Source: Macrostomum hystrix (taxonomy: Eukaryota; Animalia; Platyhelminthes). From it: 64,000 nucleotides of DNA. Position numbers and translations under genes: made by a program. Shown piece by piece: positions 15,421 to 57,183 of the stretch. The notes below the pieces were generated by a model. That model worked only from the letters and a program-made list of their open reading frames with translations, was not told the DNA's origin and did no database searches. The stretch is taken from NCBI GenBank assembly GCA_950097015.1, contig CATNEN010000034.1, positions 62,001 through 126,000 on the forward strand. Direction: 5' to 3'. Position 1 is the first letter of the stretch. Each line of letters opens with the position of its first letter.

Positions 15421-15446
15421 GAAGCTTCTTCTGATCAATCTTGCAG
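15421..15446 (+). promoter_or_regulatory. 3' splice acceptor, candidate SL trans-splice site for NAGK
   Basis: cttcttctgatcaatcttgcag immediately precedes codon GCA of the conserved N-terminus, with no ATG. Confidence 0.65.
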
Positions 15447-16529
15447 GCACCGGCCAAGCTGCTCATTGGTGTCGAAGGCGGCGCCAGCGTCACCAAGCTC
15501 TGCCTGGCCGACGCCGCCACCGGCCGGCTGCTCGGTCGCAGCCGAGTCGACGGCACCAATCATTGGCTGGTTGGCTTCGCCGCCTGCGCTGATCGTCTAG
15601 CCGTTGGCATAGAAAATCTGTTTCGGTCCATCGCCAATGACGACGGTAGGAAAATCGGCGACTTAGCCGGCATCGGCATGGCCCTGAGCGGCATCAGCAA
15701 CACCGGCAATGCCGCGGACATGGAGGCTGCCCTGCGCCAGCGCTTGCCTCAATTGCCTGCAGATTGTTGCTTAGCCATTGTCAACGATTGTGTCGGCGCG
15801 GTGGCCGCCGCAAGCGACTCCGGCGGTGTTGTCGTCATCGCCGGCACCGGCTCCAACTGCTGCCTGAGCAGTCGGGATGGCTCCGAGACGCTACATTGCG
15901 GTGGCTGGAGCTACATGCTCGGCGACGAAGGCTCCGCCTACTGGATCGCGCACCGGGCCCTCAAAGCTGTCTGGGACCAGCGCGACGGCCTGCGCGCCTG
16001 CCCGGAGCCCGTTGACGCGGTGCGAAATCTGGCCTTCAAACACTTCGACATTGACGATTACGACGGTATCCTGCCGCATTTGTACACTAATTTTGAAAAA
16101 TCGCGCGTCGCCTCGCTGACCGCTAAGCTGGCTGATTTGGCCTCGGACGGCGACGCCCTGGCCAAGCGAGTCTTCGCCGACGCCGGCGCCGAGCTAGCTA
16201 GTCACGTGATGGCCGTTGTCAGTCGGGCTGCGGAGAGCGGCGGCCAGCATCGGCTCCAAAGCCTGCTGGATTTCGCAGGCCGTCTGACAGTGGTCTGCGC
16301 CGGCTCCGTGTGGCTCAGCTACCGCCTGCTCAGCGCGGGCTTCACTGGCGCACTATGCAGTCGCGCCTGCCCGGTGTCGCTCCGTCTGGTGAGATTCAAC
16401 GACGGTGACGGCGGCGTTGGCGCTGCCGCGGGTGCCGCCTGGCTGGTCGGCCTGAAGCTCGGCGTGGAGCTGCCAGTGGATCGGGCGGGTTCGCTGCTGG
16501 AGATGGACACTATTCCCGCGTTTCGCTGA
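15447..16529 (+). CDS. NAGK: N-acetyl-D-glucosamine kinase (BadF/BadG/BcrA/BcrD ATPase family), single coding exon lacking a genomic ATG
   Basis: Motifs GVEGGAS, IVNDCVGA, VVIAGTGSNC, CGGWSYMLGDEGSAYWIA and VCAGSVW match animal NAGK. The track's TTG start is the acceptor ttgcag. Confidence 0.93.
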   Translation, partial: APAKLLIGVEGGASVTKLCLADAATGRLLGRSRVDGTNHWLVGFAACADRLAVGIENLFRSIANDDGRKIGDLAGIGMALSGISNTGNAADMEAALRQRLPQLPADCCLAIVNDCVGAVAAASDSGGVVVIAGTGSNCCLSSRDGSETLHCGGWSYMLGDEGSAYWIAHRALKAVWDQRDGLRACPEPVDAVRNLAFKHFDIDDYDGILPHLYTNFEKSRVASLTAKLADLASDGDALAKRVFADAGAELASHVMAVVSRAAESGGQHRLQSLLDFAGRLTVVCAGSVWLSYRLLSAGFTGALCSRACPVSLRLVRFNDGDGGVGAAAGAAWLVGLKLGVELPVDRAGSLLEMDTIPAFR

Positions 16530-17485
16530 TGCCCGAGATTGTTCATTCTCCCCCATGACAAAGTTTTAATAGGCACACGATTATTTTAAATTCCTTATTT
16601 TAATCTACAGAGTTTTGGGAGTTTAGTTATTTAGTTCAATTCCAAAAATGAGATCTAGGCGCTCGTAGGATCTAATATTCAATGCTAGAAATTTCAAGCT
16701 CGTGATTAACAGTCTAAGGACCGCGCTATTTCTCCCCCCTTGCGAATGACCATGGGCTGTTTCAAATACCCACTGCTACTTCACGATAGTTCCCAAACCG
16801 AATGACCGAGTTTTTGTGAAAGTCCACCATATGGATCGAAATTTTCTGCCCTTTACCATCTGTATAATCTTCTATGGCGAATCCATATTGGTAAAAAAAG
16901 AAAAAAAATTATCAACCCAAAATAGTCAGCAATGATAGCTGACATGGTCACATGATGAATTTTTGTGAGCAGAAAAATATGCCTGTATTGGTGGTTCTTG
17001 CCACCAGACACTCGGCCAAGAATCGTTGAATGTCTCGATTATACCGATTTTTGTGATTCTGAAAGTTGTTGAAACGGATAGAGCGGAAATTTTTAAGGAT
17101 TTTCATGCCTATTGATTGAATATTTAAAGAGATACAGAAAAAAGAAAAAAAATTGGCATTTGAAATATCCCCGTGGTGTTTCTACTGATCATTTAACTGT
17201 ACGCTATGATTTATGACCTTGTGCTAACATAAAGTACTAATCAGATCTTACGGTACGCGCTGTTTATATCTTAATATTGATTATATTGTCAGTTCTCTTG
17301 TATTATCAATATTCTTATATTTTACACTAGTTGCAATAGTGATTTTAAAGTAAACATTACTTTTGCTAGGCCAATCAAATTGGTGCGATGCTTTAAAATA
17401 CGACAGCATCTGTTCTGACTTATGATCATTCTCAAAGAGGCTTTTTCACCTGCGGTTTTTCCCCTGCTTGCTACTATCAATAGCC

Positions 17486-17515
17486 TAATCGGCACATTTT
17501 TGTCTTCCGTTTCAG
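17486..17515 (+). promoter_or_regulatory. Branch point, polypyrimidine tract and AG; candidate SL trans-splice site for Smad
   Basis: ctaat...catttttgtcttccgtttcag, followed in phase 0 by TCA TTA GCG...GTG AAG AGG CTG. Confidence 0.65.
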
Positions 17516-19511
17516 TCATTAGCGGGGTTAATCGGAGGCCTGCACTCTTCCTCAGTGAAGAGGCTGGTTGGCCTGGCCGCCCAGCAGCAGCCGCAGGGTG
17601 GCAGCGAGAAGACGGTGAAGTCTTTGCTGAAGCGCCTGAAGGTCCAGGAGCAGGCCAAGGTGCTGGAGCGAGCGCTGTCCGAGCAGAGCCCCAGCACCGC
17701 CTGCGTGACTGTCGCAGGCGGCGACGCCGAGCCGCTGCACGTCGTGGCCTGCAGGCTGTGGCGCTGGCCAGATTTGCAGACTGCTCAAGAGTTGCGACCG
17801 CTTGAGCACTGCCAGCACCCGTATAGGTAGAAGCCGAGAGGGTCAGGATTCGTAACCTTAGGGTCAGGATTCGTAACCTTAGAGTCAAGATTCGTAACCT
17901 TAGGGTCAGGATTCGTAACCTTAGGGTCAGGATTAGGAACCTTAGGGTCAGGATTCGTAACCTTAGGGTCAGGATTCGTAACCTTAGGGTCAGGATTAGG
18001 AACCTTAGGGTCAGGATTCGTAACCTTAGGGTCAGGATTAGGAACCTTAGGGTCAGGATTAGGAACCTTAGGGTCAGGATTAGGAACCTTAGGGTCAGGA
18101 TTAGGAACCTTAGGGTCAGGATTCGTAACCTTAGGGTCAGGATTAGGAACCTTAGGGTCAGGATTCGTAACCTTAGGGTCAGGATTAGGAACCTTAGGGT
18201 CAGGATTAGGAACCTTAGGGTCAGGATTAGGAACATTAGGGTCAGGATTAGGAACCTTAGGGTCAGGATTAGGAACCTTAGGGTCAGGATTAGGAACCTT
18301 AGGGTCAGGATTAGGAACCTTAGGGTCAGGATTAGGAACATTAGGGTCAGGATTAGGAACCTTAGGGTCAGGATTAGGAACATTAGGGTCAGGATTAGGA
18401 ACCTTAGGGTCAGGATTAGGAACCTTAGGGTCAGGATTAGGAACATTAGGGTCAGGATTAGGAACCTTAGGGTCAGGATTAGGAACATTAGGGTCAGGAT
18501 TAGGAACCTTAGGGTCAGGATTAGGAACCTTAGGGTCAGGATTAGGAACATTAGGGTCAGGATTAGGAACCTTAGGGTCAGGATTAGGAACCTTAGGGTC
18601 AGGATTAGGAACATTAGGGTCAGGATTAGGAACCTTAGGGTCAGGATGAGGAACCTTAGGGTCAGGATTAGGAACCTTAGGGTCAGGATTAGGAACCTTT
18701 GGATCAGGATTAGGAACCTTAGGGTCAGGATTAGGAACCTTAGGGTCAGGATTAGGAACCTTTGGATCAGGATTAGGAACCTTAGGATCAGGATTAGGAA
18801 CCTTAGGGTCAGCATTAGGAACCTAAGGGTCAGGATTCAGAACCTCGGATTAAAATTTAGAATGTAGGATTTGTATTCGGAATCTACTATTCGGATTTGG
18901 TATCTTTAAGGAAATTAAGGAAATTTGGAAATCTCAATCTATATGATTGAGATTTTGGATTTAAGAATCTGGGACTATATGGTTTAAGATCCAGTTTGGG
19001 TTTTAACATCGTTCCTCGTGATTTAGGATCTAGGATTGGGATTTATTATCTAGCAATGGGATTTAAGACTCGGGATTAGGATTTCAGGTCTTGGTTCAAT
19101 ATTTATGAATATTGGAATTTCCTGTCTTTAATTTTAGGATACAAAATTAAATTCTGCCTGTTCCCACGTCACCCCTTTTCATCTAATTATTGTTAAAAAT
19201 GAAAGCAAAAAATAAAATTCCATCAGATCCCGCTTCGTGGGCGATCTGTGCGTTAATCCCATGCACTACCAGCGCCTACTAGCTGGCATGGGTGCCCCCC
19301 AGGAGCCCGTCATTGTCTACTCGGCTGCTGCCGAGATCGCCGCGGCAGCCGCCACCAGTTTGGACTCTTCGTCGTTGCCGTCGCCGGATCGCGAATCGCT
19401 GCATCTGTACCTTCGCCAGGCTTCGCCAGAGGGCTACATGACTGAGGACAACTACAGCTCGGCTGCCGATCCGGCCAGCCCAGAGGCCGCTGGCTTCCAG
19501 GCTGTGAGAAT

Positions 19512-19555
<44 letters not shown>

Positions 19556-20236
19556 TGTACCAGGTATGTTTCTGTACATATAAGATATGTACAAAATTCT
19601 CTACGTTTGTAATATCTGTAGTTTTTTTCGGACAGTTTAGGTTTCGGGTTGTTTTTTAGTTTTTTGAACAGTCTAGGTTCATGTCATTCAGTCTAGGTTG
19701 CTGACATGACAGTCTAGGTTGCTGACATGACAGTCTAGGTTGCTGACATGACAGTCTAGGTTGCTGACATGACAGTCTAGGTTGCTGACATGACAGTCTA
19801 GGTTGCTGACATGACAGCCTTGTTTGCTGACATGTCAGTCTAGGTTCCTGACATGACAGTCTAGGTTGCTGACATGACAGTCTAGGTTGCTGACTTGACA
19901 GTCTAGGTTGCTGACTTGACAGTCTAGGTTGCTGACATGACAGTCTAGGTTGCTGACATGACAGTCTAGGTTGCTGACATGACAGTCTAAGTTGCTGACT
20001 TGACAGTCTAGGTTGCTGACTTGACAGTCTAGGTTGCTGACATGACAGTCTAGGTTGCTGACATGACAGTCTAGGTTGCTGACATGACAGTCTAGGTTAG
20101 GATAGGACAGTTAGGATGTCAGTTCTGACAGAAGGTTTCGTAGAGTTCAAATATTTTCTTACATTTGAATTTGTTAAGTAATTTTTTAATTACGTAAATT
20201 GGATTGAGCAAACCACACCTTTTCAACCTCGTAAAG

Positions 20237-20268
<32 letters not shown>

Positions 20269-20920
20269 GCGTCAGCAGGACCTGGCCAGCTTGTTGAGCA
20301 TTCCCTACATGGAGGCTGAGCACTGGTGCTCCGTGCACTACTACGAGCTCAACAGTCGGGTGGGCGACGCCTATTACGCAACGTCACCTTTCGTCACTGT
20401 GGATGGCGGCACGGATCCTGGTGGTCGGGGCCGTGGCCGCTTCTGCCTCGGCCTCCTATCCAATGTGAACCGCTCGCTGCCAGTTGAACAGACTCGCCGA
20501 TCCATCGGGGCCGGAGTCGGTCTGTACTACATCAACGGCGAGGTGCACGCCGAGTGCCTGTCGGACAGTCCAGTTTTCATCCAGTCTCCCAACGGCAACA
20601 TCAGGCAGGGCTGGCACCCGGCCACCGTGTGCCGCATCCCGCCCGGCTGCAACCTGTGCGTCTTCTCCATCGCCGACTTCGGCAATCAGCTGCGTCAAGG
20701 CGTTGATAAGAGCTTCGACGAAGTCTACGCCCTCACCAAGATGTGCACGATTCGCATCGCCTTTGTCAAAGGCTGGGGCAGCGAGTACAGGCGCCAGCTG
20801 ATTACTGCCACCCCATGCTGGATTGAAGTTCATCTCAACGGTCCGCTGCGCTGGCTGGACCGCGTGCTGTCGGTTCTGGGCAGCCCGGAGGGTGACTACG
20901 GCCCCACCTCCTTGAGCTGA
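17516..20920 (+). CDS. SMAD: Divergent receptor-regulated Smad (MH1 + polyQ linker + MH2), ~444 aa, 3 exons, no genomic ATG
   Basis: Exons 17516-17826, 19227-19563 and ~20237-20920 (exon 3 acceptor approximate, all candidates phase 0). MH1 motifs [15 protein letters not shown] and [10 protein letters not shown]2 motifs [14 protein letters not shown] and [12 protein letters not shown]...TPCWIE. C-terminus TSLS. Confidence 0.93.
17840..18845. repeat. 21-bp minisatellite (agggtcaggattaggaacctt)n in Smad intron 1
   Basis: About 48 copies with variant blocks (attcgt, aacatt); begins ~14 nt after the donor. Confidence 0.97.
19690..20097. repeat. 21-bp minisatellite (agtctaggttgctgacatgac)n in Smad intron 2
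   Basis: About 19 copies directly visible. Confidence 0.97.
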
Positions 20921-20933
20921 ATCAGAGCTAATC

Positions 20934-22910
20934 ATCTACTCATTCAGCACTAAGATAGACATGGATAATCTCTATAATAATCTACTCATTCAGCACTAAG
21001 ATAGAGATGGATAATCTCTATAATAATCTACTCATTCAGCACTAAGATAGAGATGGATAATCTCTATAATAATCTACTCATTCAGCACTAAGATAGAGAT
21101 GGATAATCTCTATAATAATCTACTCATTCAGCACTAAGATAGACATGGATAATCTCTATAATAATCTACTCATTCAGCACTAAGATAGACATGGATAATC
21201 TCTATAATAATCTACTCATTCAGCACTAAGATAGAGATGGATAATCTCTATAATAATCTACTCATTCAGCACTAAGATAGACATGGATAATCTCTATAAT
21301 AATCTACTCATTCAGCACTAAGATAGACATGGAAAATCTCTATAATAATCTACTCATTCAGCACTAAGATAGACATGGATAATCTCTATAATAATCTACT
21401 CATTCAGCACTAAGATAGAGATGGATAATCTCTATAATAATCTACTCATTCAGCACTAAGATAGACATGGATAATCTCTATAATAATCTACTCATTCAGC
21501 ACTAAGATAGACATGGAAAATCTCTATAATAATCTACTCATTCAGCACTAAGATAGAGATGGATAATCTCTATGATAATCTACTCATTCAGCACTAAGAT
21601 AGACATGGATAATCTCTATAATAATCTACTCATTCAGCACTAAGATAGACATGGATAATCTCTATAATAATCTACTCATTCAGCACTAAGATAGACATGG
21701 ATAATCTCTATAATAATCTACTCATTCAGCACTAAGATAGACATGGATAATCTCTATAATAATCTACTCATTCAGCACTAAGATAGACATGGATAATCTC
21801 TATAATAATCTACTCATTCAGCACTAAGATAGACATGGAAAATCTCTATAATAATCTACTCATTCAGCACTAAGATAGAGATGGATAATCTCTATGATAA
21901 TCTACTCATTCAGCACTAAGATAGACATGGATAATCTCTATAATAATCTACTCATTCAGCACTAAGATAGACATGGATAATCTCTATAATAATCTACTCA
22001 TTCAGCACTAAGATAGACATGGATAATCTCTATAATAATCTACTCATTCAGCACTAAGATAGAGATGGAAAATCTCTATAATAATCTACTCATTCAGCAC
22101 TAAGATAGAGATGGATAATCTCTATAATAATCTACTCATTCAGCACTAAGATAGAGATGGAAAATCTCTATAATAATCTACTCATTCAGCACTAAGATAG
22201 AGATGGATAATCTCTATAATAATCTACTCATTCAGCACTAAGATAGACATGGATAATCTCTATAATAATCTACTCATTCAGCACTAAGATAGACATGGAT
22301 AATCTCTATAATAATCTACTCATTCAGCACTAAGATAGAGATGGATAATCTCTATAATAATCTACTCATTCAGCACTAAGATAGAGATGGATAATCTCTA
22401 TAATAATCTACTCATTCAGCACTAAGATAGAGATGGATAATCTCTATAATAATCTACTCATTCAGCACTAAGATAGAGATGGAAAATCTCTATAATAATC
22501 TACTCATTCAGCACTAAGATAGAGATGGATAATCTCTATAATAATCTACTCATTCAGCACTAAGATAGACATGGATAATCTCTATAATAATCTACTCATT
22601 CAGCACTAAGATAGACATGGATAATCTCTATAATAATCTACTCATTCAGCACTAAGATAGAGATGGATAATCTCTATAATAATCTACTCATTCAGCACTA
22701 AGATAGACATGGATAATCTCTATGATAATCTATTCATCCAGCAGAAGCATAGAGATGGATAATCTCTATAATAATCTACTCATTCAGCACTAAGATAGAC
22801 ATGGATAATCTCTATGATAATCTATTCATCCAGCAGAAGCATAGAGATGGATAATCTCTATAATTCTTCCATCATCCAGCAGAAGCATAGATATGGATAA
22901 TCAGTAATTT
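20934..22910. repeat. 46-bp minisatellite immediately after the Smad stop codon
   Basis: Unit aatctactcattcagcactaagataga[c/g]atggataatctctataat, ~43 head-to-tail copies with no spacers. Confidence 0.97.
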
Positions 22911-23439
22911 AATCCCTTCATCTACAATTGATCCATGAAGACATATTTTTCCGTAATGTTCTGACTATGGTGTTTGCTTCTGTGTGTAATTTTATTATTT
23001 ATTAATCAGTTTAACTTATGCACGTATTGAGCTGGGTTTTGGCTTTGCAATGTGTTTACATTTCTCTCATCCATGCTGTTATGAACAGAAATATTTTATT
23101 TCTAGATTTGTTTACTTATTTTGCCATAGAGCAGGATTTAGATTTGACTCATCATTTTCCCGGTTCATTGCAGTTCAGAGATAGAGCTTGTACTCTTTTC
23201 AAGAAATCATTCAACGACGGTGTATTATATTTAAGCTATTCTGCATGCATTGTTGCTTATTCTGTTTTAAAAGTTCACATTGTTTTTTATTTTAAAAGCG
23301 TCATTTTTTCTTAAATGGATTTTCATTGAAAAGCTTTCACTGCCCATATTATGAATGCTGTGTTGGTATTCTTGCTTTTGACATCCAATGTTCTGTCCGA
23401 TTCTATTACGGGAGATTAACCCTCTTGACCATCTGATCC

Positions 23440-26400
23440 CTATAATCCCAAATCCATCAGATCCTATAATCCCAAATTCATCAGACCCTTATAATCCCAA
23501 ATTCATCAGATTCTTATAATCCCAAATCCATCAGATTCTTATAATCCCAAATTCATCAGATTCTTATAATCCCAAATCCATCAGATTCTTATAATCCCAA
23601 ATCCATCAGATTCTTATAATCCCAAATCCATCAGATTCTTATAATCCCAAATCCATCAGACCCTTATAATCCCAAATCCATCAGACCCTTATAATCCCAA
23701 ATCCATCAGATTCTTATAATCCCAAATTCATCAGATTCTTATAATCCCAAATCCATCAGATTCTTATAATCCCAAATCCATCAGATTCTTATAATCCCAA
23801 ATCCATCAGATTCTTATAATCCCAAATCCATCAGATTCTTATAATTCCAAATCAATCAGATTCTTATAATCCCAAATCCATCAGACCCTTATAATCCCAT
23901 ATCCATCAGATTCTTATAATCCCATATCCATCAGACCCTTATAATCCCAAATTCATCAGATTCTTATAATCCCAAATCCATCAGATTCTTATAATCCCAA
24001 ATCCATCAGATTCTTATAATCCCAAATCCATCAGATTCTTATAATCCCAAATTCATCAGACCCTTATAATCCCAAATTCATCAGATTCTTATAATCCCAA
24101 ATCCATCAGACCCTTATAATCCCATATCCATCAGACCCTTATAATCCCAAATTCATCAGATTCTTATAATCCCAAATTCATCAGATTCTTATAATCCCAA
24201 ATCCATCAGATTCTTATAATCCCAAATCCATCAGATTCTTATAATCCCAAATTCATCAGACCCTTATAATCCCAAATTCATCAGATTCTTATAATCCCAA
24301 ATCCATCAGATTCTTATAATCCCAAATCCATCAGATTCTTATAATCCCAAATCCATCAGATTCTTATAATCCCAAATCCATCAGATTCTTATAATCCCAA
24401 ATCTATCAGATTCTTATAATCCCAAATCCATCAGATTCTTATAATCCCAAATTCATCAGACCCTTATAATCCCAAATCCATCAGACCCTTATAATCCCAA
24501 ATTCATCAGATTCTTATAATCCCAAATCCATCAGACCCTTATAATCCCAAATCCATCAGACCCTTATAATCCCAAATTCATCAGACCCTTATAAACCAAA
24601 TTTCCATCAGACCCTTATAATCCCAAATTCATCACACCCTTATAATCCCAAATCCATCAGACCCTTATAATCCCAAATTCATCAGACCCTTATAATCCCA
24701 TATCCATCAGATTCTTATAATCCCAAATTCATCAGACCCTTATAATCCCAAATCCATCAGACCCTTATAATCCCAAATCCATCAGACCCTTATAATCCCA
24801 AATCCATCAGACCCTTATAATCCCAAATCCATCAGATCCTTATAATCCCAAATTCATCAGACCCTTATAATCCCAAATCCATCAGACCCTTATAATCCCA
24901 AATCCATCAGATTCTTATAATCCCAAATCCATCAGATTCTTATAATCCCAAATCCATCAGATCATTATAATCCCAAATCCATCAGATTCTTATAATCCCA
25001 AATCCATCAGATTCTTATAATCCCAAATCTATCAGATTCTTTTAATCCCAAATCCATCAGATTCTTATAATTCCAAATCTATCAGATTCTTATAATCCCA
25101 AATCCATCAGACCCTTATAATCCCATATCCATCAGATTCTTATAATCCCAAATCCATCAGATTCTTATAATCCCAAATCCATCAGATTCTTATAATCCCA
25201 AATCCATCAGACCCTTATAATCCCAAATCCATCAGATCATTATAATCCCAAATTCATCAGACCCTTATAATCCCAAATCCATCAGACCCTTATAATCCCA
25301 AATCCATCAGATCATTATAATCCCAAATCCATCAGATTCTTATAATCCCAAATCCATCAGATTCTTATAATCCCAAATCTATCAGATTCTTATAATCCCA
25401 AATCCATCAGATTCTTATAATTCCAAATCTATCAGATTCTTATAATCCCAAATCTATCAGATTCTTATAATCCCAAATCCATCAGATTCTTATAATCCCA
25501 AATTCATCAGACCCTTATAATCCCAAATCCATCAGATTCTTATAATCCCAAATCCATCAGATTCTTATAATCCCAAATCCATCAGACCCTTATAATCCCA
25601 AATTCATCAGACCCTTATAATCCTAAATTCATCAGACCCTTATAATCCCAAATCCATCAGACCCTTATAATCCCAAATTCATCAGACCCTTATAATCCCA
25701 TATCCATCAGACCCTTATAATCCCAAATCCATCAGACCCTTATAATCCCAAATCCATCAGACCCTTATAATCCCAAATTCATCAGACCCTTATAATCCCA
25801 TATCCATCAGATTCTTATAATCCCAAATTCATCAGACCCTTATAATCCCAAATCCATCAGACCCTTATAATCCCAAATCCATCAGACCCTTATAATCCCA
25901 AATCCATCAGACCCTTATAATCCCAAATTCATCAGACCCTTATAATCCCAAATCCATCAGACCCTTATAATCCCAAATCCATCAGATTCTTATAATCCCA
26001 AATCCATCAGATTCTTATAATCCCAAATCCATCAGACCCTTATAATCCCAAATCCATCAGATTCTTATAATCCCAAATTCATCAGATCATTATAATCCCA
26101 AATTCATCAGACCCTTATAATCCCAAATTCATCAGACCCTTATAATCCCAAATCCATCAGATTCTTATAATCCCAAATTCATCAGACCCTTATAATCCCA
26201 AATCCATCAGATCATTATAATCCCAAATCCATCAGATTCTTATAATCCCAAATCCATCAGATTCTTATAATCCCAAATCCATCAGATTCTTATAATCCCA
26301 AATCCATCAGATTCTTATAATCCCAAATCCATCAGACCCTTATAATCCCAAATCCATCAGATCATTATAATCCCAAATTCATCAGACCCTTATAATCCCA

Positions 26401-26652
26401 AATCCATCAGACCCTTATAATCCCAAATCCATCAGATCATTATAATCCCAAATCCATCAGATTCTTATAATCCCAAATCCATCAGATTCTTATAATCCCA
26501 AATCCATCAGATTCTTATAATCCCAAATCCATCAGATTCTTATAATTCCAAATCTATCAGATTCTTATAATCCCAAATCTATCAGATTCTTATAATCCCA
26601 AATCCATCAGATTCTTATAATCCCAAATCCATCAGATTCTTATAATCCCAAA
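23440..26652. repeat. 25-bp minisatellite (ataatcccaaatccatcagattctt)n, ~3.2 kb
   Basis: About 128 copies with biallelic positions (attc/accc, atcc/attc). Confidence 0.97.
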
Positions 26653-27469
26653 CGTTTTCGATCTTAGTCAGTTTGCAATACTTGTTGGATTATAAGTTGT
26701 GACCTACTTTTTCTGTTTTGTTTTGTTCGTTTTGCTGATTTATTAATTCACAGTTTTTCAATAGTGAATAAAAAGCTTTATAAACAATTGGCTACCAATT
26801 TGCTTCTCAGAAGCTGTAATAATTAAAGTTCTGCTCTGTTTTAGTGTCTAATTGCCTCATCCAACGATGAACATACGAGCTATATTTTATTATTTTATAA
26901 ATCTCAGTTTTCCTTTGCATTACGCAGTATTCTAAATGGATCATTAAAACTAAAACCTTCAAAGCCGACAAAGCCTAAAACTGTAAAACTTTATAAAAGT
27001 AACACTTAAATAGAATTTTATAAAACTTAGTCAGAGGCTCACAAGAATTATAAAAACAAATCCAATTTAATGTTGTCTTGCTTTTTGCTGGTTCTGTGAT
27101 TGCTTCAGCATGATATGCCCTTCTGAAGTTATTTTCTAAAAATATCTTTATTAGCTTCTCATCGGCGACCATTTGTCTCCTGCTCAGCTAACATCCACGC
27201 GTTCGTGAGGAATTGAATAAAATGCAACTAGGCTCCATTGTTGCTGAATTGCTTTGTCTATTTATAATATTTATAAAAGTAAAATCTAAAGTTGCTTTCG
27301 CTTTGACAGCCTTTCAGCAGTGTCTCAATGCTCTACTTTTGACTATAACATCATAGCGAGTATTCTTAACAGTTGTGGCATTTATTTAGGTCGGTCAGGA
27401 TTAAGATAAGTGGTGTATTGAATAAGTGCAGCGACAAATAGCGATACAGACATCTTGAAGGGAGATTTA

Positions 27470-27962: not shown

Positions 27963-28190
27963 GGTGTAGGAAGAAAGTACGATTCCTAGAAAAATAGAAG
28001 TCTAAAATAGCAAGTGGACGGTGGAATCCATCGCACCATATCTTTTCTCAACCCGGGATCCATCCCTTGTTTTGTCACAGCGAATTCGCGTAGCCGGGCT
28101 GCCTAGGTCGTCCCTTCGCAAGGCGGCAAGCGGCCAGCAGCAGCACCAGCAGCAACTGTATCCCCCCGTGTGTCCCTGATCCCAGTGGCC

Positions 28191-31100
28191 ATGCACCGTC
28201 TCTTTGTGGCGTCGCACGCGTTCGCGCCAGATCGACCTGACGAAGATCTGGAACTGCAGCCCGGCGACTGCGTGGCCCTGCTGGAGAGACTGCCCGGCTG
28301 CGACTGGGGCCGTGGCGTCTCGCTGGCCACAGAGGCTACAGGCATCTTCCCCATGAACTTCGTCACCGAGCTGGCCGCCGGTGACTGCGAAGCCAAGATT
28401 GGTGAGCTCGGTGATTTGAGGGTTAGTGGAGCGGCTAGGTGAGGTAGTGGAGTGGCTAGGTGAGGTAGTGGAGTGGCTAGGTGAGGTAGTGGAGTGGCTA
28501 GGTGAGGTAGTGGAGTGGCTAGGTGAGGTAGTGGAGTGGCTAGGTGAGGTAGTGGAGTGGCTAGGTGAGGTAGTGGAGTGGCTAGGTGAGGTAGTGGAGT
28601 GGCTAGGTGAGGTAGTGGAGTCGTTGGATCATGTAGTAGAGTGGTTGGATAATGTAGTAGAGTGGTTGGATAATGTAGTAGAGTCGTTGGATCATGTAAT
28701 AGAGTCGTTGGATCATGTAGTAGAGTGGTTGGATACTGTAGTAGAGTGGTTGGATAATGTAGTAGAGTGGTTGGACAATGTAGTAGAGTGGTTGGATAAT
28801 GTAGTAGAGTGGTTGGATAATGTAGTAGAGTGACTGGTTGGGGTAGTAGAGTGGCAGAGTTAGGCGCATAGTCGTGAAGACGGGTATTAGAGTGACTGGT
28901 TGGGGTAGTAGAGTGGCAGAGTTAGGCGCATAGTCGTGAAGACGGGTATTAGAGTGCCAGATTGAATTAGATAGTTTTGGCCGTTTGTTAAAACTAGACG
29001 GTTAAATTTTTGTTCCGCCAACCGTTGCTAGGCGCCGATCAGCGGTTGTACCTGTGCAGGCACAGCTTCCCAGCTGACGCGGCCGGAGATTTGGCGATGT
29101 CGCCCGGCGACCTCATCCTCAGCCTGCAGCAGATCGATGCCAACTGGTGCCTGGGCCGGCGCCTGACATCTGCGCAGAACGGCTATTCCAGCGATGACAA
29201 CGAGGGCGCCTTTCCGCTGACTCACGTGAAGGATGTGACCCACCTGGCGGCGCGCACAGACGCGGCGGCATCCGAGGTCAGCGAGAAAAGCCGGCAGCAG
29301 CGGCCGAGGCACGCCGTCGCCACCAAATCCGTTGCGGCCGCTCACTTCGGCGGCGAGTTGAGCTTCAACCAGGGCGATCGGCTCATTGTGACGAGAGAAA
29401 TCGACGAAGTTTTTCTCGAAGGCTACTGCGGAGACCGCTTCGGCATGTTCCCAGCTGACTATGTCCGCTTCCTGGACGAGGAACAAGTTCACGACAATGG
29501 TTGCGACGCTGGCGACGGCTTCACAGAGGAGGCACTGCTGACTGAGTCGCAGCCGCTGCGCTCAGAACCCGCAAGGGCTGTTTTGCAGGTAAGCATCGTT
29601 TACTCGTATTAGTACGAGGGACACCTCGTAATCTGTTTGACGGCTTTTTATTGAGCCGATCAGTGAAGGACAAAAAATCTGTCGATATAATCAATCAATA
29701 AATCGATCATCGGACAAATCAATCAATAAATTTGATCAGCTGCCCAAATCAATCAATAAATTTGTTTAGCTGCCCGAATCAATCAATAAATTTAGTCAGC
29801 TGTCTAAATCAATCAAAAAATCATCTGATCTGACCAGATCACCCAATAAATTGATCGTTCGACCAAATTAACCGATGAAATAAAACTGATCAAATCAATC
29901 AGTTAATTAATTAGCTGACCAAATGGATCACTAGATTGGTCAGCTGACTAGATCAATCGATAAAGCGATACGCTAAAATTGGTTTATAGTGGTGATCAAC
30001 GAGATAAATAAAAAATAGCTTATTCTTGGTTTAAATGTGTAAAACTGCATCAAGAATCCAATTCAGCGTACCAAGAAGCCAAATCAGGTTAATTAACCAA
30101 ATTATTTAGTTTTCTACCCCCCACGCAATTCTCAGAATCGTCAGGCGCCGATTCCTCTGTACGAGCCGGAGCAGGAGCTGCAGTCCTACGGCCAGGTGAA
30201 ATATCCGTTTGTAGCCCAGGAGACTGGCGAGCTAACAGTCATGCCGGACACCATAGTCTACCTTCTGGGCCATCAGTATAACGAGTGGACCTACTGCATG
30301 GTGGACAGCGACTACGGGCCACAGCGTGGCCTCGTGCCCACTGCCTACATAGACATCATTGTGGACTGCGACTCCGCTAGGCCGGTCCTCGAGCCGCAGT
30401 CAGTTGCTGAAGATACAGCGTCCGGAAGCAGGCCGCAACAACGGGAGCCGGCCTTTCACTTCAGCAGTCTGGACGCCAGCGAGGCCCGCGGTATCAGCCT
30501 GGACCAGGCCATCAGTGCCGAACTGTCTATGGCCCGAGCTGCCGGCACGGAGCGTTTGCGCTCCATGCCCGATAGCGAAAAAGCCGCCATTGCGCAGCGA
30601 CTCATGGCCCAGACTGAGAGCCTGCTGCAGTCCGCCAGCGTTCAGGCCAAGCCTCCGCTGCCGCCTCCGCCTCTTCCGCCGCCTTCGGTGCTGCTACCGC
30701 CGCCGCCGATGCCTCCGCTGCCGCTGCCACCACCGCTGCCGCCGTCCGTCAGTCCGTCGCGCGTCGCTCCGTCTGTGCCGCCGATGCCGTCGGATTCGCT
30801 CGTCAGCAAGCGTCTCGCCAGCTTTGACAACAACTCATCCGCTTTTGCTGGCGCCGATGATCAGGTTGTTCGCGACCTGCGCAGTCGCATCAGCAGTCTG
30901 GATCGTCAAGGAGACAGCGGATCAGCCGCTGATGCCCGCTCAACCACCGCCGCAGAAACCGGCTTCTCCTCAGCTGGCGGCGACGGCGAGCGGGCCTACC
31001 TCACAGACATCCTCGCCGGGCTAGTTGAAACTCCTGCCGACGCCGCCGTCAGCGAGGAGGCTGCCAAGCGTCGCCGTCGTTGGGGCCACGTATTCAACGA

Positions 31101-40174: not shown

Positions 40175-40370
40175 TTGTCTCATCTATTCTCTAGGTCCAC
40201 TGTCTCATCTATTCTCTAGGTCTACTGTCTCATCTATTCTCTAGGTCTACTGTCTCATCTATTCTCTAGGTCCACTTTCTCATCTATTCTCTAGGTCCAC
40301 TGTCTCATCTATTCTCTAGGTCTACTGTCTCATCTATTCTCTAGGTCTACTGTCTCATCTATTCTCTGTA
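40175..40370. repeat. 25-bp minisatellite (tctcatctattctctaggtc[t/c]actg)n
   Basis: About 7-8 copies downstream of DENR. Confidence 0.93.
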
Positions 40371-48400: not shown

Positions 48401-49486
48401 TGCGGAAGTTAGGACATTGAGGGAGAGGATGAGACATTGTTGCGCAAAAGGATAATTTTAAACAAGAGTTTGTGGCCAGAATGTGGGCAATAGGGCAGAT
48501 TGCGGGCAATAGGGCAGATTGCGGGCAATAGGGCAGATTGTGGGGAAGAGGGCAGATTGTGGGCAATAGGGCAGATTGTGGGGAAGAGGGCAGATTGTGG
48601 GCAATAGGGCAGATTGTGGGCAATAGGGTAGATTGTGGGGAAGAGGGCAGATTGTGGGCAATAGGGCAGATTGTGGGCAATAGGGTAGATTGTGGGCAAT
48701 AGAGCAGATTGTGGGCAATAGGGCAGATTGTGGGCAATAGAGCAGATTGTGGGCAATAGAGCAGATTGTGGGCAATAGGGCAGATTGTGGGCAATAGGGC
48801 AGATTGTGGGCAATAGGGCAGATTGTGGGCAATAGGGCAGATTGTGGGGAAGAGGGCAGATATTGGGGAAGTGGGCAGATTTTGGGGAAGTGGGCAGATA
48901 TTGGGGAAGTGGGCAGATATTGGGGAAGTGGGCAGATTTTGGGGAAGTGGGCAGATAGTGGGGAAGTGGGCAGATTGCGGGGAAGACGGCTGGTTGTGGG
49001 GAAGTGTGCAGGTTGCGGGGAATTTGGCAGGTTGTGGTGAAGATGGCAGGTTGCGGGGAAGTTGGCAGGTTGCGGGGAAGTGTGCAGGTTGCGGGGAAGA
49101 TGGCAGGTTGTGGGGAAGTTGGCAGGTTGCGGGGAAGTGTGCAGGTTGCGGGGAAGATGGCAGGTTGCGGGGAAGTTGGCAGGTTGCGTGGAAGATGGCA
49201 GGTTGCGGGGAAGTGGGCAGGTTGTGGGGAGGATGACAAGGACTAAAAGAACTGTCAATCAGACAGGGCCTGTTCCACCCCAATGGTCGGTGGCCTTCGC
49301 TCACTTTCTCTGCGCCGGGGTGTGCAGAGCCAGCCGGTAAACGCAGCTAGTGGCGGTGTACAGGACACAGAAGATCAGCAGCTCACGGAACACCAGCTTG
49401 TAGACGGAGGCCCGCCAGATGCCCAGCAGCCTGGCCAATCCCAGCAGCTTGACCTCGCCAACTCGGTAGGAGTATGAGTAGGTCAT
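42452..49486 (-). CDS. BEST: Bestrophin anion channel with a very long low-complexity C-terminal tail, ~887 aa, 8 coding exons
   Basis: Exons 49486-49305, 47318-47184, 47009-46843, 46751-46594, 46292-46215, 46131-45955, 45701-45263 and 43779-42452; total 2664 nt with matched phases. Motifs MTYSY, LGFYV...[41 protein letters not shown]. The last-exon join is less certain than the core. Confidence 0.9.
43870..44240. repeat. (GGCTAA)n-type hexamer microsatellite with variants, in the last bestrophin intron
   Basis: Long ctaaggctaagg runs interspersed with gggctagg and ggttaagg. Confidence 0.95.
44810..45215. repeat. 15-bp minisatellite (catgaccccaactc-type) with a 9-unit higher-order duplication
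   Basis: The translated track shows 5-aa units with the block [25 protein letters not shown] recurring nine units later. Confidence 0.92.
46405..46530. repeat. G-rich degenerate repeat (ggaggtgggtgg...) in a bestrophin intron
   Basis: Repeated gggtgg/ggaggt tracts. Confidence 0.85.
47380..47620. repeat. 17-bp minisatellite (gatggagtgaggtgggc)n in bestrophin intron 1
   Basis: About 13 copies. Confidence 0.93.
48480..49230. repeat. 19-bp G-rich minisatellite with a progressive unit gradient, bestrophin intron 1
   Basis: The unit drifts from gggcagattgtgggcaata through gggcagatattggggaagt to ggcaggttgcggggaagat. Confidence 0.95.
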
Positions 49487-50796
49487 GGCGCTCCGCTGAG
49501 CCTCAAGATCTGTTGTCGGGGCAGGCGCCTACGGATTAGCCGGCTTCGCTTGGTTTTTAAAGAGGCCCAGAGATTTCAGGCGCCGATTGCAGATTAAGCA
49601 ACAAAGGAGTCCAGCTGCGCTAACAATGAGCCCTATAGAACTGGCTCCAGCCGGACACAACTGGAAACTACTGGATAGGCGGCAGGGCGTGGGTAGGTCG
49701 CAGATAGAATGATTAGAAAGTAAAGCTGAGAGGTGAGACAGATGCAGAGAAAAAAATTACGGAGGGGGTGGGTCGGTTTGGTGGTCTGGCAACAGACAAA
49801 ACGCCTGCGACTAAGGCCAGAGGTTGAATACTTATGCCGCAGTGTTGCGCGTGGGAGTGCCCTAAGGACTGGTCCAAAATGCACTGGTCGGCTAAGTGAG
49901 CTGCGTGCGGAGCAGGCGATGACTCACGGTTCCGCGGCCTCTAACTAACAATGTCGGCTGTAAACAAGCCTGTTAAAAGCTGCTGCCCTTACCGCCCTTT
50001 TATCCCTTAAAACTGCATCGCCTTGACTTCCCCATCCAATCCGGCCGGAGGGTTGCAATTTTTCTCCCAACACCGTCCTCCTAAATCTCCCGTCTGAGGC
50101 GGGGAGCACGTACAGGCCCGAAATCCGGCGGACTCCCAAGCCATCCAGTCTGTCTCTAAGCTTATAGGCTGGCGCAGAAACCCCACGCTGAGCTTGTCTG
50201 CTGACTGTGGCGACTGCGCATGCGTGAGTGAGTGTGTTTTACTGACGGAGGGAGGGAGGGAGTGAGGGAGGGGGAGACGGCGCCATTGCAGTACAGCGAG
50301 TACAGCTTCCTCGCCGGCCCGACTAAATTAGGCCAGCCAATAGGCCAGTATAGCCAGCCAACCTTTCTACCCCCCCAGGAGCCTTCTCTCCATTCCTTTC
50401 CCCACCCCACCAGCATTCATCGTAGCATGCGGCCCTCCCGTTAACAAGCAGCGATTCGGATGCAGACGTAACTATAGTAAGGATAGATATACTATAGTAT
50501 AGTATAGTATAGGCTAAACTGAATTAGTTCAATGCCTGTACCTGCGTGTTGTGCCTCTGTACAATAGTTAAAGCGGCGAAGTCCACCCCGATTTTAAGGC
50601 GACCCAGCGAGGTCGCTGGGAGGTCACTGAGACATGTGCATGCAGTATGTTGTGCATTTTGGCACACGCGGAAAAATGCCTGCTTAAATACAGGTTGACA
50701 CTGCTATGACTAATAAAGCGTACATACAGTTCTTCTTAGATGCAAGCTAATCATTTTTCTTTTAATTTGAATGGCTGGTGCTATACCTGTTCTCTA

Positions 50797-50890
50797 CCGG
50801 TGGCAGAGCGGTCAACGCGTTTGTCTGGGCTCGATTCCGCTGCGGAGCCGCAGAGAGAAGGCTTGCGGGCTTGTCGTGCTGATGATGTGC
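50797..50890 (+). mobile_element. Internally deleted S1 SINE-like fragment
   Basis: tggcagagcgg (strong A box), gggctcgattcc (B box) and gagaaggcttg...cttgtc are shared with S1. Confidence 0.6.
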
Positions 50891-51809
50891 CATTCCCTGA
50901 AAATATTATTAAAATATTCAAATAAGCATTTTAAATTCTCACTGCATAATCTCTTCGTATCGGGAAATTAGGTAACACTATACTCACTTATTATCCCCCT
51001 AAAATTTCCCCAGTGGCATTGTTAGACTGCATGGCGAAGCGTATGTATTTGACAGCATTTCAAAACTACAGCCACCCATGCACGCTATTAATCAGCTTTA
51101 AAGATCTAAAATTGACCTCACTTCACTTTACCTGGAGAATCGGTTTTGTTTACGAAAAAGCCGACTAAATCGAGATATGAACCGCATTCTTTTCGGCCGC
51201 AAAAACTTCAAAGAGCTTCCGCCAGTAGCTCTCTCGAAAAAAAGTACTAAAAAAGCCCATTAGCCAAGAAACATGTGAAAATGCGTTGTCCAAATATGAA
51301 ATCTAAACTTTCCTACCTGCGCAGTAGGACCAATGCGGCTATGTATTTATTTCTGCAGCAATAAGAATTTACACAATCAATTGAAAATTACATGTCATTT
51401 ACGCATTCATAGCTGATATAACTAAAGTAGCTTTCATATGAAAAAACATTGAATTGACACTGATGATTTGTGAAGAATTGTAAGACTAGCATTGACGGAT
51501 GGCTACGAAAAGTAGAGAAGTTATATCAATAATTATCGAATCAAAAAACTAAACTTTAGATAATTATAGTTAAATGGTTTCGACAATTCGTTGATTTAGT
51601 CAAAGAAACAGTTAAAAAAACAAAAGAGTACGGACTCTAGCCTGCCTAACTACTATAAGTACTATATAGGCGGCAATAGGCGTTTCTCGGTCAGCACCCA
51701 GTTAAGCGGAAATCGCACGATTCATATAAGAAGCCATGTAAATAATCATGCTTTTTGAAATAGCAAATCAGAAATAACCAATCAAATATTAGCAAGCTTT
51801 TTATCGCAA

Positions 51810-52100
51810 CAGCCAATCAGAGAGCCGCAGGCTTTCCTCAACAGCCGGTAAGAACCATTAGATTCTCTCTGAAAGCCAATCAGAATATTCAAAGGCTTTA
51901 AACGCAACAGCAAATCAGAGTGTCCTTCGCTACTCTACCCTAACAGCCAATCAGTGTCCTTCGCTTCTCATTCCTAACAGCCAATCAGAGTGTGCTTCGC
52001 TTCTCAACCCTAACAGCCAATCAGAGTGTCCTACGCTTCTCAACCCCAAAAGCCAATCAGAGGGTCCTTCGCTTTTCTACCCCAACAGCTAATCAGAAAG
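51810..52100. repeat. Degenerate tandem array built on agccaatcag (CCAAT-box consensus), 3' of the MXRA7-like gene
   Basis: Repeated acagccaatcagag units of about 30-35 bp. Confidence 0.85.
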
Positions 52101-52120
52101 CCGCAGGCTTTTACCCTGGT

Positions 52121-53209
52121 CTAAGCGTACAGACTCAACTGGTTCTTAATCTGCTCCAAAGAAGCTTTCGAAACGGCGCTGTCACCGGTAACTCCATCGC
52201 CCTGCCGTTCGGCCAGAATGCCGGAAATCTCTCTCAACTGGTCCAGCACAATGTCGCGCTCCTGCTGCAACTCATCCGGCGACAGACTGTCGAGCAGTTT
52301 AGCCTGTTCGGCTTTCTTCAATCTGCCAGGCAGATGTGCGAATGGTACTGGATTTGGTTCTGATTTTAGCTTCTGGGGCTGCTGCAGTTGCCTATTATGT
52401 GCCGCCAATAATTGCGATGCTTCTTCGTCTCTCAGGTTTGCTTTAGTCACCAGTTCTGCAGTTTTAAATCATAAAAAGCAAAAAATGTTCTTGTTTAATT
52501 TTGTAGGACGTAGCTGGACATTAAGCAGTCTAAAAGAAAAAAGAAAATTGCCTGCAGAGTTGAAAAAAGTAGGTTACTAGCTTGTCCATGAGAAAGTAGC
52601 ATGATGTTCTGGATAGCGAGGTCTTCTCTCAAGCCAGCCAATCAGAGACTAACAGAGTCTCATATCGAGCCAGCCAATCAGAGATTGTCAAGGTCTTCTG
52701 TCGAGCCAGCCAATCAGAGACAAAAGGTTTACTCTCTGAGCCAGGATATCAGAACTAACCAAGTTTTTCTCTCGCGCAAGCAAATCAGAGACTACCAGGG
52801 TCTCCTCTCGGGCCAGCCAATCAGAGACTACTAGGGTCTTCTCTCGAGCCAGCCAATCAGAGATTACTAGGGTCTTCTCTTGAGCTAGCCAATCAGAGAC
52901 TATTAGGGTCTTCTCTCGAGCCAGCCAATTAGAGACTAACAAGATCTTCTCTTGAGCCAGCCAATCAAATAATAGCAGGGTATTCTATGTGAGCAAACTA
53001 ATTGGGCAATCAGAGAATCTTGCCCAGCTTAGCTTACCGTCCTGAGCCCTGGATTTCTCTGCAGCCACCTCGGCCGCCCATTGGGCAGTGAGCTGACGCC
53101 GCCGGATCAACTGCTGAGCCAGCGTAGCCAGCAGGCAGGCCAGCACGGTGGTCAGTATGACTAGCAGTGCCTGACCAGCGTTGCCTTCTGATGCACGCGG
53201 ATCAGTCAT
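52121..53209 (-). CDS. MXRA7: MXRA7-like single-pass membrane protein, 168 aa, 2 exons
   Basis: Exons 53209-53038 and 52455-52121 (phase 1 matched, 507 nt). N-terminal hydrophobic helix ALLVILTTVLACLLATLA. The C-terminus PGRLKK...SPDELQQERDIVLDQLREI...IKNQLSLYA resembles the MXRA7 helical domain (recognised from memory, not searched). Confidence 0.7.
52620..52985. repeat. ~33-bp minisatellite with cagccaatcagag in each unit, MXRA7-like intron
   Basis: About 10 units of gagccagccaatcagagactactagggtcttctctc type. Confidence 0.9.
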
Positions 53210-53398
53210 GGCCGGGCCTGGAATATAAGACGTTAGAAATATCCCATTACATTACTACTAGTAGCAAGAATGAAAGCGACTCTAAAATAAAAAAAATAAC
53301 TGCGTTTCCGTCTTAACCGTTCACATTTCGAATAGTTTTTGAATAGCTCAGGCTTCGTATACTCACAATGATATAGAGCTGTCTTGAACGAAAAACTA

Positions 53399-53404
53399 TT
53401 TATT
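53399..53404 (-). terminator. Candidate polyadenylation signal AATAAA for SDR39U1
   Basis: TTTATT on the + strand, ~113 nt after the SDR39U1 stop and ~180 nt before the next acceptor. Confidence 0.5.
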
Positions 53405-53516
53405 TACATAAAAATAGAAATGATTTGTTTGCAGAACTCGAGTAAGGCGTAGAAAAAAAGTTTATGCTAGGTAGAGAACCGGATGAAAAGTAGCTGGCAA
53501 GCTAAAAGTACAAAGT

Positions 53517-54831
53517 CTAGTAGCCGTAGATATCTCGCATAGCTTCGCGCAGATCGGCAAACTGGAACCTGTAGCCGGCCTCCTGGGTTCGTCTGGGCGA
53601 CACGAAAGCGCCGTCGATAAGAACGCCGGCCCTATCGGCGCCGAACATCAGACGAACCACCGCTGCCGGTGTAGTTAAAAAGGCCGGACGGCGCAGACTG
53701 GCAGCCAGAGCGGCAGCCAAATCCGAGCTCGTATTCTGAGCGGGCGCCACCGCATTGAGCACGTCTAGATGAGCTGCTGCTAGAGCGGGCAGGTCTGCCA
53801 GCAATGCGTGCTGGAGAACACCAACAGCATCTTTGATGTGCACCCAGGCAACTGGCTGGCGGCCGCTGGCCACCGGACCGCCGAGGCCCAGGCGGAACGG
53901 CAGGGCCATGCTGGCTAGGGCGCCGCCGTCCCGGCCCAGGGCGACGCCCATGCGAACGGCTACGCGGCGAGTGGCAGGCGTCGATTGGGCAAAGATAGCT
54001 TCTTCGATGCTGACGCATAGTCGGCCGGCCAGGCTAGAGTCGGCGGGTCCGGAATAATATTCGTCGTAGACTGGCTGAGGTCCGGAGGAGACGAGCTGCG
54101 CGGAGAGGGGATCGGCGCAAGTTGGCAATTGCAAAACAATCAAGTATAGAAACTGCTCGATTGTCTTCATATTCCCATTAAAATGTGGGCACTCAAGCAT
54201 CATTTTGGCGCACTACCAACCTGAAGTCGGCGACTCGAGGAATTCTTCATTGTCAGGTGGTTGGCACTTACGGGCGCAAACAACAAGCCCCCAAGCCTTC
54301 CAACCGCGGATTCGAGCTCAGGGACTCTGGGCGGAGAGTTGGACCCCTATAAGAGGAATAGTAATTCCCACGACTGAAATCCCAAGATTCGATTGAGCAG
54401 GGAGCACTCACAGACGAAGGGTAATAACCCACGGCAGACACTCCAACCAGACGTCGAGGCGGCTTCGGTTGAACGCCTTCGGCTGCAGCGGCCAGGCAGC
54501 GAATCCGGCCGATCCGACTGTCGAACAATTCGTCAACATACTGACGGTAGGCGGCAGCTGACAGCCGCAGAGCTGGGCCGGACTCCAGGATGCTCCTGCC
54601 AGACAGGCAGCAAACAGCTTCAACACCGTCAGGTAGGCCGCATCGTTCGACCTCCGACCAGGTCAGCGAATCCGAGGAGTCCCCCGATGTCGCCAATTGG
54701 TGTCGGCTGCTGCGTCGCCGATCTATAGAGACAACTCGATGGCCGGCGGAGCGGAGGCTGCGCAACAGGTGGCGGCCGATGAAGCCGCTGGCACCGCCGA
54801 TGGCGATGACGGATCGCGGGAAACTGGGAGG
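53517..54831 (-). CDS. SDR39U1: Epimerase family protein SDR39U1 (TIGR01777-type NAD(P)-binding), ~333 aa, 2 exons, no genomic ATG
   Basis: Exons 54831-54412 and 54095-53517 (phase 0). Rossmann motif IAIGGASGFIG, VSAVGYYP, VRMGVALGRDGGAL...PFRLGLGGPVASGRQPVAWVHIKD, LNAVAP and VSPRRTQEAGYRF. Confidence 0.9.
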
Positions 54832-54844
54832 CTGCAAATAATAA

Positions 54845-57183
54845 ACAGGATGGGGTAGCAACCAATATACAGGATGGGGTAGCAACCAATATACAGGATG
54901 GGGTAGCAACCAATATACAAGATTGGGGTAGCAACCAATATACAGGATGGGGTAACAACCAATATACAGGATGGGGTAACAACCAATATACATGATGGGG
55001 TAGCAACCAATATACAGGATCGGGTAGCAACCAATATACAAGATTGGGATAGCAACCAATATACAAGATTGGGGTAGCAACCAATATACAGGATAGGTAG
55101 CAACCAATATACAGGATGGGGTAGCAACCAATATACAGGATGGGGTAGCAACCAATATACATGATTGGGGTAGCAACCAATATACAGGATGGGGTAGCAA
55201 CCAATATACAGGATGAGGTAGCAACCAATATACAGGATGGGGTAGCAACCAATATACATGAATGGGGTAGTAACCAATATACAGGATGGGGTAGCAACCA
55301 ATATACAAGATTGGGGTAGCAACCAATATACAGGATGGGGTAGCAACCAATATACAAGATTGGGGTAGCAACCAATATACAGGATGGGGTAGCAACCAAT
55401 ATACAGGATGGGGTAGCAACCAATATACAAGATTGGGGTAGCAACCAATATACAGGATGGGGTAGCAACCAATATACAGGATGGGGTAGCAACCAATATA
55501 CAGGATGGGGTAGCAACCAATATACAGGATGGGGTAGCAACCAATATACAAGATTGGGGTAGCAACCAATATACAGGATGGGGTAGCAACCAATATACAG
55601 GATGGGGTAGCAACCAATATACAAGATTGGGGTAGCAACCAATATACAGGATGGGGTAGCAACCAATATACAAGATTGGGGTAGCAACCAATATACAGGA
55701 TGGGGTAGCAACCAATATACAGGATGGGGTAGCAACCAATATACATGATTGGGGTAGCAACCAATATACAGGATGGGGTAGCAACCAATATACAGGATGG
55801 GGTAGCAACCAATATACAGGATGGGGTATCAACCAATATACAGGATGGGGTATCAACCAATATACAGGATGGGGTAGAAACCAATATACAGGATGGGGTA
55901 GCAACCAATATACAGGATGGGGTAGCAACCAATATACAGGATGGGGTAGCAACCAATATACAGGATGGGGTATCAACCAATATACAGGATGGGGTAGCAA
56001 CCAATATACAGGATGGGGTATCAACCAATATACAGGATGGGGTAGCAACCAATATACAGGATGGGGTAGCAACCAATATACAGGATGGGGTAGCAACCAA
56101 TATACAGGATGGGGTATCAACCAATATACAGGATGGGGTAGCAACCAATATACAGGATGGGGTAGCAACCAATATACAGGATGGGGTAGTAACCAATATA
56201 CAGGATGGGGTAGCAACCAATATACAGGATGGGGTAGCAACCAATATACAGGATGGGGTAGCAACCAATATACAGGATGGGGTAGCAACCAATATACATG
56301 ATTGGGGTAGCAACCAATATACATGATTGGGGTAGCAACCAATATACAGGATGGGGTAGCAACCAATATACAGGATGGGGTAGCAACCAATATACAGGAT
56401 GGGGTAGCAACCAATATACAGGATGGGGTAGCAACCAATATACAGGATGGGGTATCAACCAATATACAGGATGGGGTAGCAACCAATATACAGGATGGGG
56501 TAGCAACCAATATACAGGATGGAGTAGCAACCAATATACAGGATGGGGTAGCAACCAATATACAGGATGGGGTAGCAACCAATATACAGGATGGGGTAGC
56601 AACCAATATACAGGATGGGGTAGCAACCAATATACATGATTGGGGTAGCAACCAATATACATGATTGGGGTAGCAACCAATATACAGGATGAGGTATCAA
56701 CCAATAAACAGGATGGGGTAGCAACCAATATACAGGATGGGGTAGCAACCAATATACAGGATGGGGTAGCAACCAATATACAGGATGGGGTAGCAACCAA
56801 TATACAGGATGGGGTAGCAACCAATATACAGGATGGGGTAGCAACCAATATACAGGATGGGGTAGCAACCAATATACATGATTGGGGTAGCAACCAATAT
56901 ACATGATTGGGGTAGCAACCAATATACAGGATGGGGTAGCAACCAATATACAGGATGGGGTAGCAACCAATATACAGGATGGGGTAGCAACCAATATACA
57001 GGATGGGGTAGCAACCAATATACAGGATGGGTATCAACCAATATACAGGATGGGGTAGCAACCAATATACAGGATGGGTAGCAACCAATATACAGGATGG
57101 GGTAGCAACCAATATACAGGATGGGGTAGCAACCAATATACAGGATGGGGTAGCAACCAATATACAGGATGGGGTAGCAACCA
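54845..57183. repeat. 24/25-bp minisatellite (caggatggggtagcaaccaatata)n between ITPA and SDR39U1
   Basis: About 95 copies; ends about a dozen nt from the SDR39U1 acceptor. Confidence 0.97.

Follow-up and report, generated by a model that had tools for sequence, protein, structure and literature searches.

The 64-kb stretch of Macrostomum hystrix DNA analyzed here (hereafter the window) carries three conserved genes that lack an ATG of their own: the N-acetylglucosamine kinase-like gene NAGK (opening at 15447, + strand), a Smad gene (17516, +) and SDR39U1 (54831, -). A first-pass annotation had described each of them as opening in phase 0 just past a polypyrimidine/AG acceptor and as lacking an in-frame ATG between this acceptor and the first conserved motif, and had suggested that a trans-spliced leader supplies the start codon. 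When re-read, all three sites were as described, and a frame check of the three genes agreed that no in-frame ATG intervenes. The AG adjoins the first codon in every case (ttgcag/GCA at 15446/15447, tttcag/TCA at 17515/17516 and tttgcag/CCT at 54832/54831), and the family assignments were upheld by Pfam matches to PF01869 for NAGK (1.8e-21), MH1 for Smad (5.6e-17) and Epimerase for SDR39U1 (1.4e-7).

At NAGK, the sequence ...ttcttctgatcaatcttgcag is followed by GCA CCG GCC AAG, with atcttgcag directly before 15447, and the frame is closed by a TGA 5 codons upstream of the acceptor (15432). The coding part is one exon of 360 codons (15447-16526, stop at 16527-16529), whose earliest in-frame Met, at residue 78, lies beyond the GVEGG phosphate-binding motif. 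At Smad, ...ttgtcttccgtttcag leads into TCA TTA GCG, ccgtttcag stands directly before 17516, a TAA closes the frame 10 codons upstream (17486) and exon 1 contains no Met. SDR39U1 opens with ...tgtttattatttgcag and then CCT CCC AGT, with tattatttgcag directly before 54831; the 140 codons of its exon 1 (54831-54412) include zero Met and are followed by GTGAGT, and the coding part of exon 2 spans 54095-53520. With one Met added, 8 residues precede GVEGG in NAGK, compared with 4-9 in most relatives, and 12 precede GGASGFIG in SDR39U1, for which the family median is 6 and the range 6-23. The predicted N-termini would read (M)APAKLLIGVEGG... for NAGK and (M)PPSFPRSVIAIGG... for SDR39U1.

RNA evidence was drawn from Logan assembled contigs (assembly graph k=31) of four runs, mapped on positions 14000-17835, which hold the NAGK and Smad acceptors. 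Spliced RNA is present in runs X3, X4 and X5, whose contigs span the Smad intron, with depth falling to 0 over 17328-17455. A 1384-nt contig from X5 fits 15446-16805 from its 25th letter, leaving 24 non-genomic letters at its 5' end, and a 907-nt contig from X4 fits 15446-16328, again with 24 letters left over 5' of the NAGK acceptor. One contig from X3 is colinear with the genome from 15359 through this acceptor and represents unspliced precursor or DNA; beside the joined forms of X4 and X5, it indicates that unspliced precursor (or some DNA) is present in the libraries. For Smad, each of the runs X3, X4 and X5 yielded contigs that match 17515-17826, with 23 letters left over at the 5' end, and that continue at the 3' end into the next spliced exon. 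Non-genomic 5' sequence was therefore found exactly at the acceptor of NAGK in two runs (24 letters) and of Smad in three (23 letters), at the very positions, 15447 and 17516, where the first-pass annotation had placed a joined leader. Among the joints listed, none leads from anywhere in 14000-17515 to the NAGK or Smad acceptor, so the cis-spliced upstream exon that had been named as the contrary case does not appear among the listed joints within 3.5 kb of these two genes.

At both NAGK and Smad the match between contig and genome takes in one base of the AG, which implies that the foreign piece ends in a G that is not preceded by A, as expected for ...GCATG. The number of leader letters (24-25) is constant across runs and genes, probably because a k=31 graph branches where the 5' piece is common to thousands of transcripts. 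Only 5-6 gene letters would then be left in the k=31 word at the branch, and a private upstream exon would be expected to assemble further. We infer that the non-genomic 5' piece on NAGK and Smad RNA is the spliced leader.

Table 1. Features around the three gene openings in the M. hystrix window and, in the last row, the matching Smad sites of M. lignano
Feature	Position	Strand	Evidence
NAGK outron end, pyrimidine tract and AG (ttgcag 15441-15446)	15359..15446	+	Sequence; X3 contig colinear, X4 and X5 contigs break at 15446
NAGK (N-acetylglucosamine kinase-like), single coding exon	15447..16529	+	PF01869; 74% identity to M. lignano P0001; X4 and X5 contigs
Smad predicted trans-splice acceptor, ttgtcttccgtttcag	17490..17515	+	Sequence; contigs start at 17515; depth 0 at 17328-17455
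Smad first coding exon, N-terminal part of MH1, lacking ATG, GT donor at 17827	17516..17826	+	MH1 match; X3, X4 and X5 contigs
SDR39U1 candidate acceptor, cctgtttattatttgcag, adjoining a 24-bp minisatellite	54832..54860	-	Sequence; M. lignano acceptor in the same phase and codon position
SDR39U1 exon 1, 140 codons, Rossmann GGASGFIG motif, lacking ATG	54412..54831	-	Sequence, frame and Epimerase match
Second AG, 8 nt inside SDR39U1 exon 1, CCTCCCAG then T	54824..54825	-	Sequence; kept in M. lignano
SDR39U1 exon 2, 192 codons and stop, DUF1731 part	53517..54095	-	71% identity to M. lignano P0033, E 1.5e-77
M. lignano Smad sites lacking AG	L001:6310-6370; L002 and L003:11800-11870		

The leader itself is well documented in this genus. 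Wiberg et al. 2023 (PMC10468722) report one and the same leader for M. lignano, M. cliftonense and M. hystrix, ending ...TTTATTGC-ATG, and its published 3' end reads ...CAATTTATTGCATG. Four studies (Wasik 2015; Wudarski 2017, PMC5730564; Ustyantsev and Berezikov 2021, PMC8629364; PMC10468722) report that 20-39% of Macrostomum genes are trans-spliced, and they explicitly term the final ATG of the leader a translation start codon. Further, according to PMC10468722, PMC12582326 and PMC5832876 all reported flatworm leaders end in AUG, and Cheng et al. 2006 is cited there for the use of this AUG as an initiator. This literature agrees with the statement of the first-pass annotation that flatworm leaders end in an AUG that can initiate translation (shown in Schistosoma); the case that would have spoken against its proposal, a leader in this species with another ending, is not what has been published for M. 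hystrix (PMC10468722).

Given this pattern, we propose that NAGK, Smad and probably SDR39U1 are trans-spliced by the spliced leader at the AG directly before their first coding codon. A leader ending in AUG, joined at these phase-0 acceptors, would produce AUG-GCA..., AUG-UCA... and AUG-CCU..., with the initiator codon formed by its last three letters. That NAGK and Smad are trans-spliced at the predicted acceptors has a high probability, and the leader AUG is the sole in-frame start available to these two genes. Judging from its sequence, SDR39U1 is probably trans-spliced like the other two, and translation of all three would start at the leader AUG. Taken as a whole, with the leader AUG acting as initiator, we regard this reading as likely. 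The idea that the leader supplies the start is partly supported: for NAGK and Smad by their RNA joints, a leader ATG that would be in frame and the lack of any other start; for SDR39U1 it meets a competing AG that is out of frame.

Comparison with M. lignano, whose annotation was made by trimming the leader and cutting genes at mapped trans-splice sites, bears on each gene differently. All three M. lignano copies of NAGK open in phase 0 at ttttgcag/GCT GAG, with an N-terminal extension 10 residues longer than in the window. None of the six deposited models has a Met; the acceptor is the exact starting point of four, and the other two read across it. Because this annotation was cut at mapped trans-splice sites, a NAGK model that starts at the acceptor is indirect experimental support for trans-splicing there. 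A protein homologue search with NAGK returned M. lignano (74% identity) and distant relatives only, and a record search for contigs encoding the NAGK of the window gave no match, the P0001 cluster being composed of genome-derived models only. We also considered the model starts of M. lignano as a general map of trans-splice sites; they are valid as such for NAGK, and were set aside as unreliable since the Smad starts at L001:6364 and L003:11907 adjoin no AG.

The SDR39U1 orthologue of M. lignano, which carries PF01370 and PF08338, was matched by exon 2 of the window gene as a query, while exon 1 as a homologue query gave no match at E <= 1e-8. It opens in phase 0 at ccccgcag/TCT CCC AGC GTC, a codon position that agrees with that in the window (MSPSVRPSVIAVGG vs MPPSFPRSVIAIGG); the frame has a stop 19 codons upstream and no ATG, and the model is marked 'partial'. 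The second AG 8 nt downstream is also kept in both species (CTCCCAG), its M. lignano form being TCTCCCAG then C, and only use of the first AG would keep the leader ATG in frame with SDR39U1. In the window, the frame upstream of the acceptor stays open for 542 codons through a 24-bp minisatellite and includes in-frame ATGs at 54993 and 55746. An ATG-based caller would more likely extend SDR39U1 than truncate it as a result. The prediction that ATG-based annotation truncates or misses such genes must therefore be amended for SDR39U1, for which the open upstream frame makes a spurious repeat-encoded N-terminus likelier than truncation. We rejected a genuine repeat-encoded N-terminus: it is absent in M. 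lignano, where the upstream stop removes the repeat-encoded ATGs as a conserved SDR39U1 start. The minisatellite itself (54860-57260, -) spans 2.3 kb with a 24-bp unit and is open in three frames.

Several observations weigh against the leader as the source of all three starts. For SDR39U1, trans-splicing is deduced from sequence at a candidate acceptor rather than from reads, and use of the second AG would shift the leader ATG out of frame. The start of the M. lignano model P0033, at L004:6001, lies one base past this second AG, as would be expected from trans-splicing at the out-of-frame AG. In M. lignano, all three copies of the Smad gene lack an AG where the window has its acceptor (ttcttctg/tcgctcgcc), so the phase-0 acceptor arrangement is not conserved for Smad; the nearest strong acceptor of the M. 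lignano gene lies 48 nt upstream, in phase, and is followed by TAG TGA, with no in-frame ATG. The 23-24-letter pieces on NAGK and Smad RNA are known by their length, position and final G, from which their identity as leader is deduced. Finally, no spliced-leader RNA gene was found within the 64-kb window and the AUG ending of the leader is taken from the genus literature. A search of the window for the leader 3' end gave one match with 3 mismatches (29780-29797), which was equalled in 8 of 100 shuffles and is at chance level.

The start codon of one or more of the three genes could instead come from a cis-spliced upstream exon. The source of the 23-24 loose letters could lie outside 14000-17835, the SDR39U1 acceptor is known from sequence, and ITPA lies upstream of SDR39U1 on the same strand. 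We nevertheless consider this very unlikely, since no joint to the NAGK or Smad acceptors is listed within 3.5 kb and, for Smad, the exon would need to lie beyond the whole NAGK gene. Further, the loose pieces are equal in length in every run and nearly equal in both genes, where a private exon should assemble further, and the M. lignano NAGK and SDR39U1 models are 5'-partial despite a transcript-based annotation. A shared library oligonucleotide ending in G, such as a template-switch oligo, would yield an identical contig geometry if it were attached to transcripts truly beginning at 15447 and 17516, with translation from a non-AUG start. This is the explanation to which we give the least credence and which we find barely plausible: in three samples, both genes would need a transcription start on the very base that follows a strong pyrimidine-tract AG, the unspliced form of NAGK in X3 extends upstream of the acceptor, and trans-splicing is pervasive in Macrostomum.

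SDR39U1 may also differ from the other two genes, either through use of the second AG, which would begin the exon at 54823 and lead the leader AUG out of frame into a 66-codon junk frame, or through an mRNA that continues unspliced across the acceptor and starts at the minisatellite ATG at 54993 or 55746. The conservation of the second AG in both species and the start of P0033 one base past it would fit the former, and the 542 open codons with two ATGs the latter. RNA-like runs hold 0.54-0.61 of 13 sampled words over 54741-54922, above the roughly 0.40 expected from exon-only words; the share is ambiguous, since junction and repeat words are inseparable and transcripts may include the repeat as part of the outron or of the ITPA 3' untranslated region. 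An out-of-frame start would leave the Rossmann motif untranslated in an exon that has no other ATG, and the first AG past a pyrimidine tract is normally the one chosen, which counts against use of the second. The repeat-encoded extension is AT-rich and has no counterpart in M. lignano, with its stop 19 codons upstream, and other M. lignano model starts adjoin no AG either, so the start at 6001 says little. On balance a separate course for SDR39U1 appears unlikely.

Leader-donated starts of the kind proposed here for Macrostomum have parallels in other flatworms. In Schistosoma, as here, the leader ends in AUG, a phase-0 acceptor precedes a conserved open reading frame that lacks AUG, and a normal N-terminal length is reached only with the leader Met; leader-AUG initiation was shown there by reporter assays, whereas the Macrostomum case is known from sequence and RNA contigs. 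The species here also differs from Schistosoma in belonging to a free-living, early-branching flatworm group. In Echinococcus granulosus, 143 of 187 leader-bearing clusters counted as full length, by prediction, only with the leader ATG (PMC3510090). As in that study, leader-AUG use is kept between orthologues, here those of NAGK and probably SDR39U1 in two Macrostomum species; unlike here, where three genes are described and the leader is deduced, its survey was transcriptome-wide and the leader was read on cDNAs (PMC3510090). The Macrostomum trans-splicing studies (Wasik 2015; PMC5730564; PMC8629364; PMC10468722) concern the same genus and the same leader, and in the passages searched we found no list or share of genes that depend on the leader ATG.

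Nematode trans-splicing with SL1 and SL2 is comparable: it too removes the outron at an ordinary 3' splice site and resolves operons. To our knowledge, no nematode leader ends in AUG or donates a start codon, unlike that of Macrostomum.

NAGK, Smad and SDR39U1 are new examples of a mechanism already known in flatworms and noted for this genus. They add three cases from a free-living, early-branching flatworm to what was established in parasitic flatworms in 2006, and open no new question. Their practical value lies in annotation: gene models here and in M. lignano will be 5'-partial, truncated or over-extended unless the leader ATG is added at trans-splice sites, and a wrong extension of SDR39U1 would run into the minisatellite. 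It is possible, though we would suggest it only tentatively, that a large share of Macrostomum genes, on the order of the three in ten put forward by the first-pass annotation, may have lost their own start and depend on the leader AUG. If so, leader-donated initiation would be a quantitatively major, evolving trait of Macrostomum that ATG-based annotation systematically overlooks, with the phase-0 acceptor kept between species despite changes in extension length, as for NAGK, and with occasional turnover, as for Smad in M. lignano.

The surroundings of these genes are also partly conserved. The same-strand orders NAGK then Smad (window 15447-20900) and ITPA then SDR39U1 (53517-58300) are kept in M. 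lignano (loci L001, L003 and L004), where both gene pairs lie on one contig, NIVC01000334. The pairs may represent operons that are resolved through trans-splicing. Most of the NAGK-Smad spacer is covered by RNA contigs, which reach to about 17260 and so stop some 250 nt short of the Smad acceptor. The M. lignano ITPA-SDR39U1 spacer contains 25-26-bp tandem repeats (L004:4572-5558) that are unrelated to the minisatellite of the window. Directly upstream of the NAGK acceptor lies a high-copy repeat (14768-15407) with a contig depth of 170-540, compared with about 14 over the gene, and a second repeat occupies 16776-16860 in the 3' region of NAGK; breaks occur in many contigs at 15367-15373 and at 16776. 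Within the Smad gene we observed two 21-bp minisatellites with 94% matches, at 17839-18845 (48 copies) and 19668-20098 (20.6 copies), the first of which begins 13 nt past the exon 1 donor.

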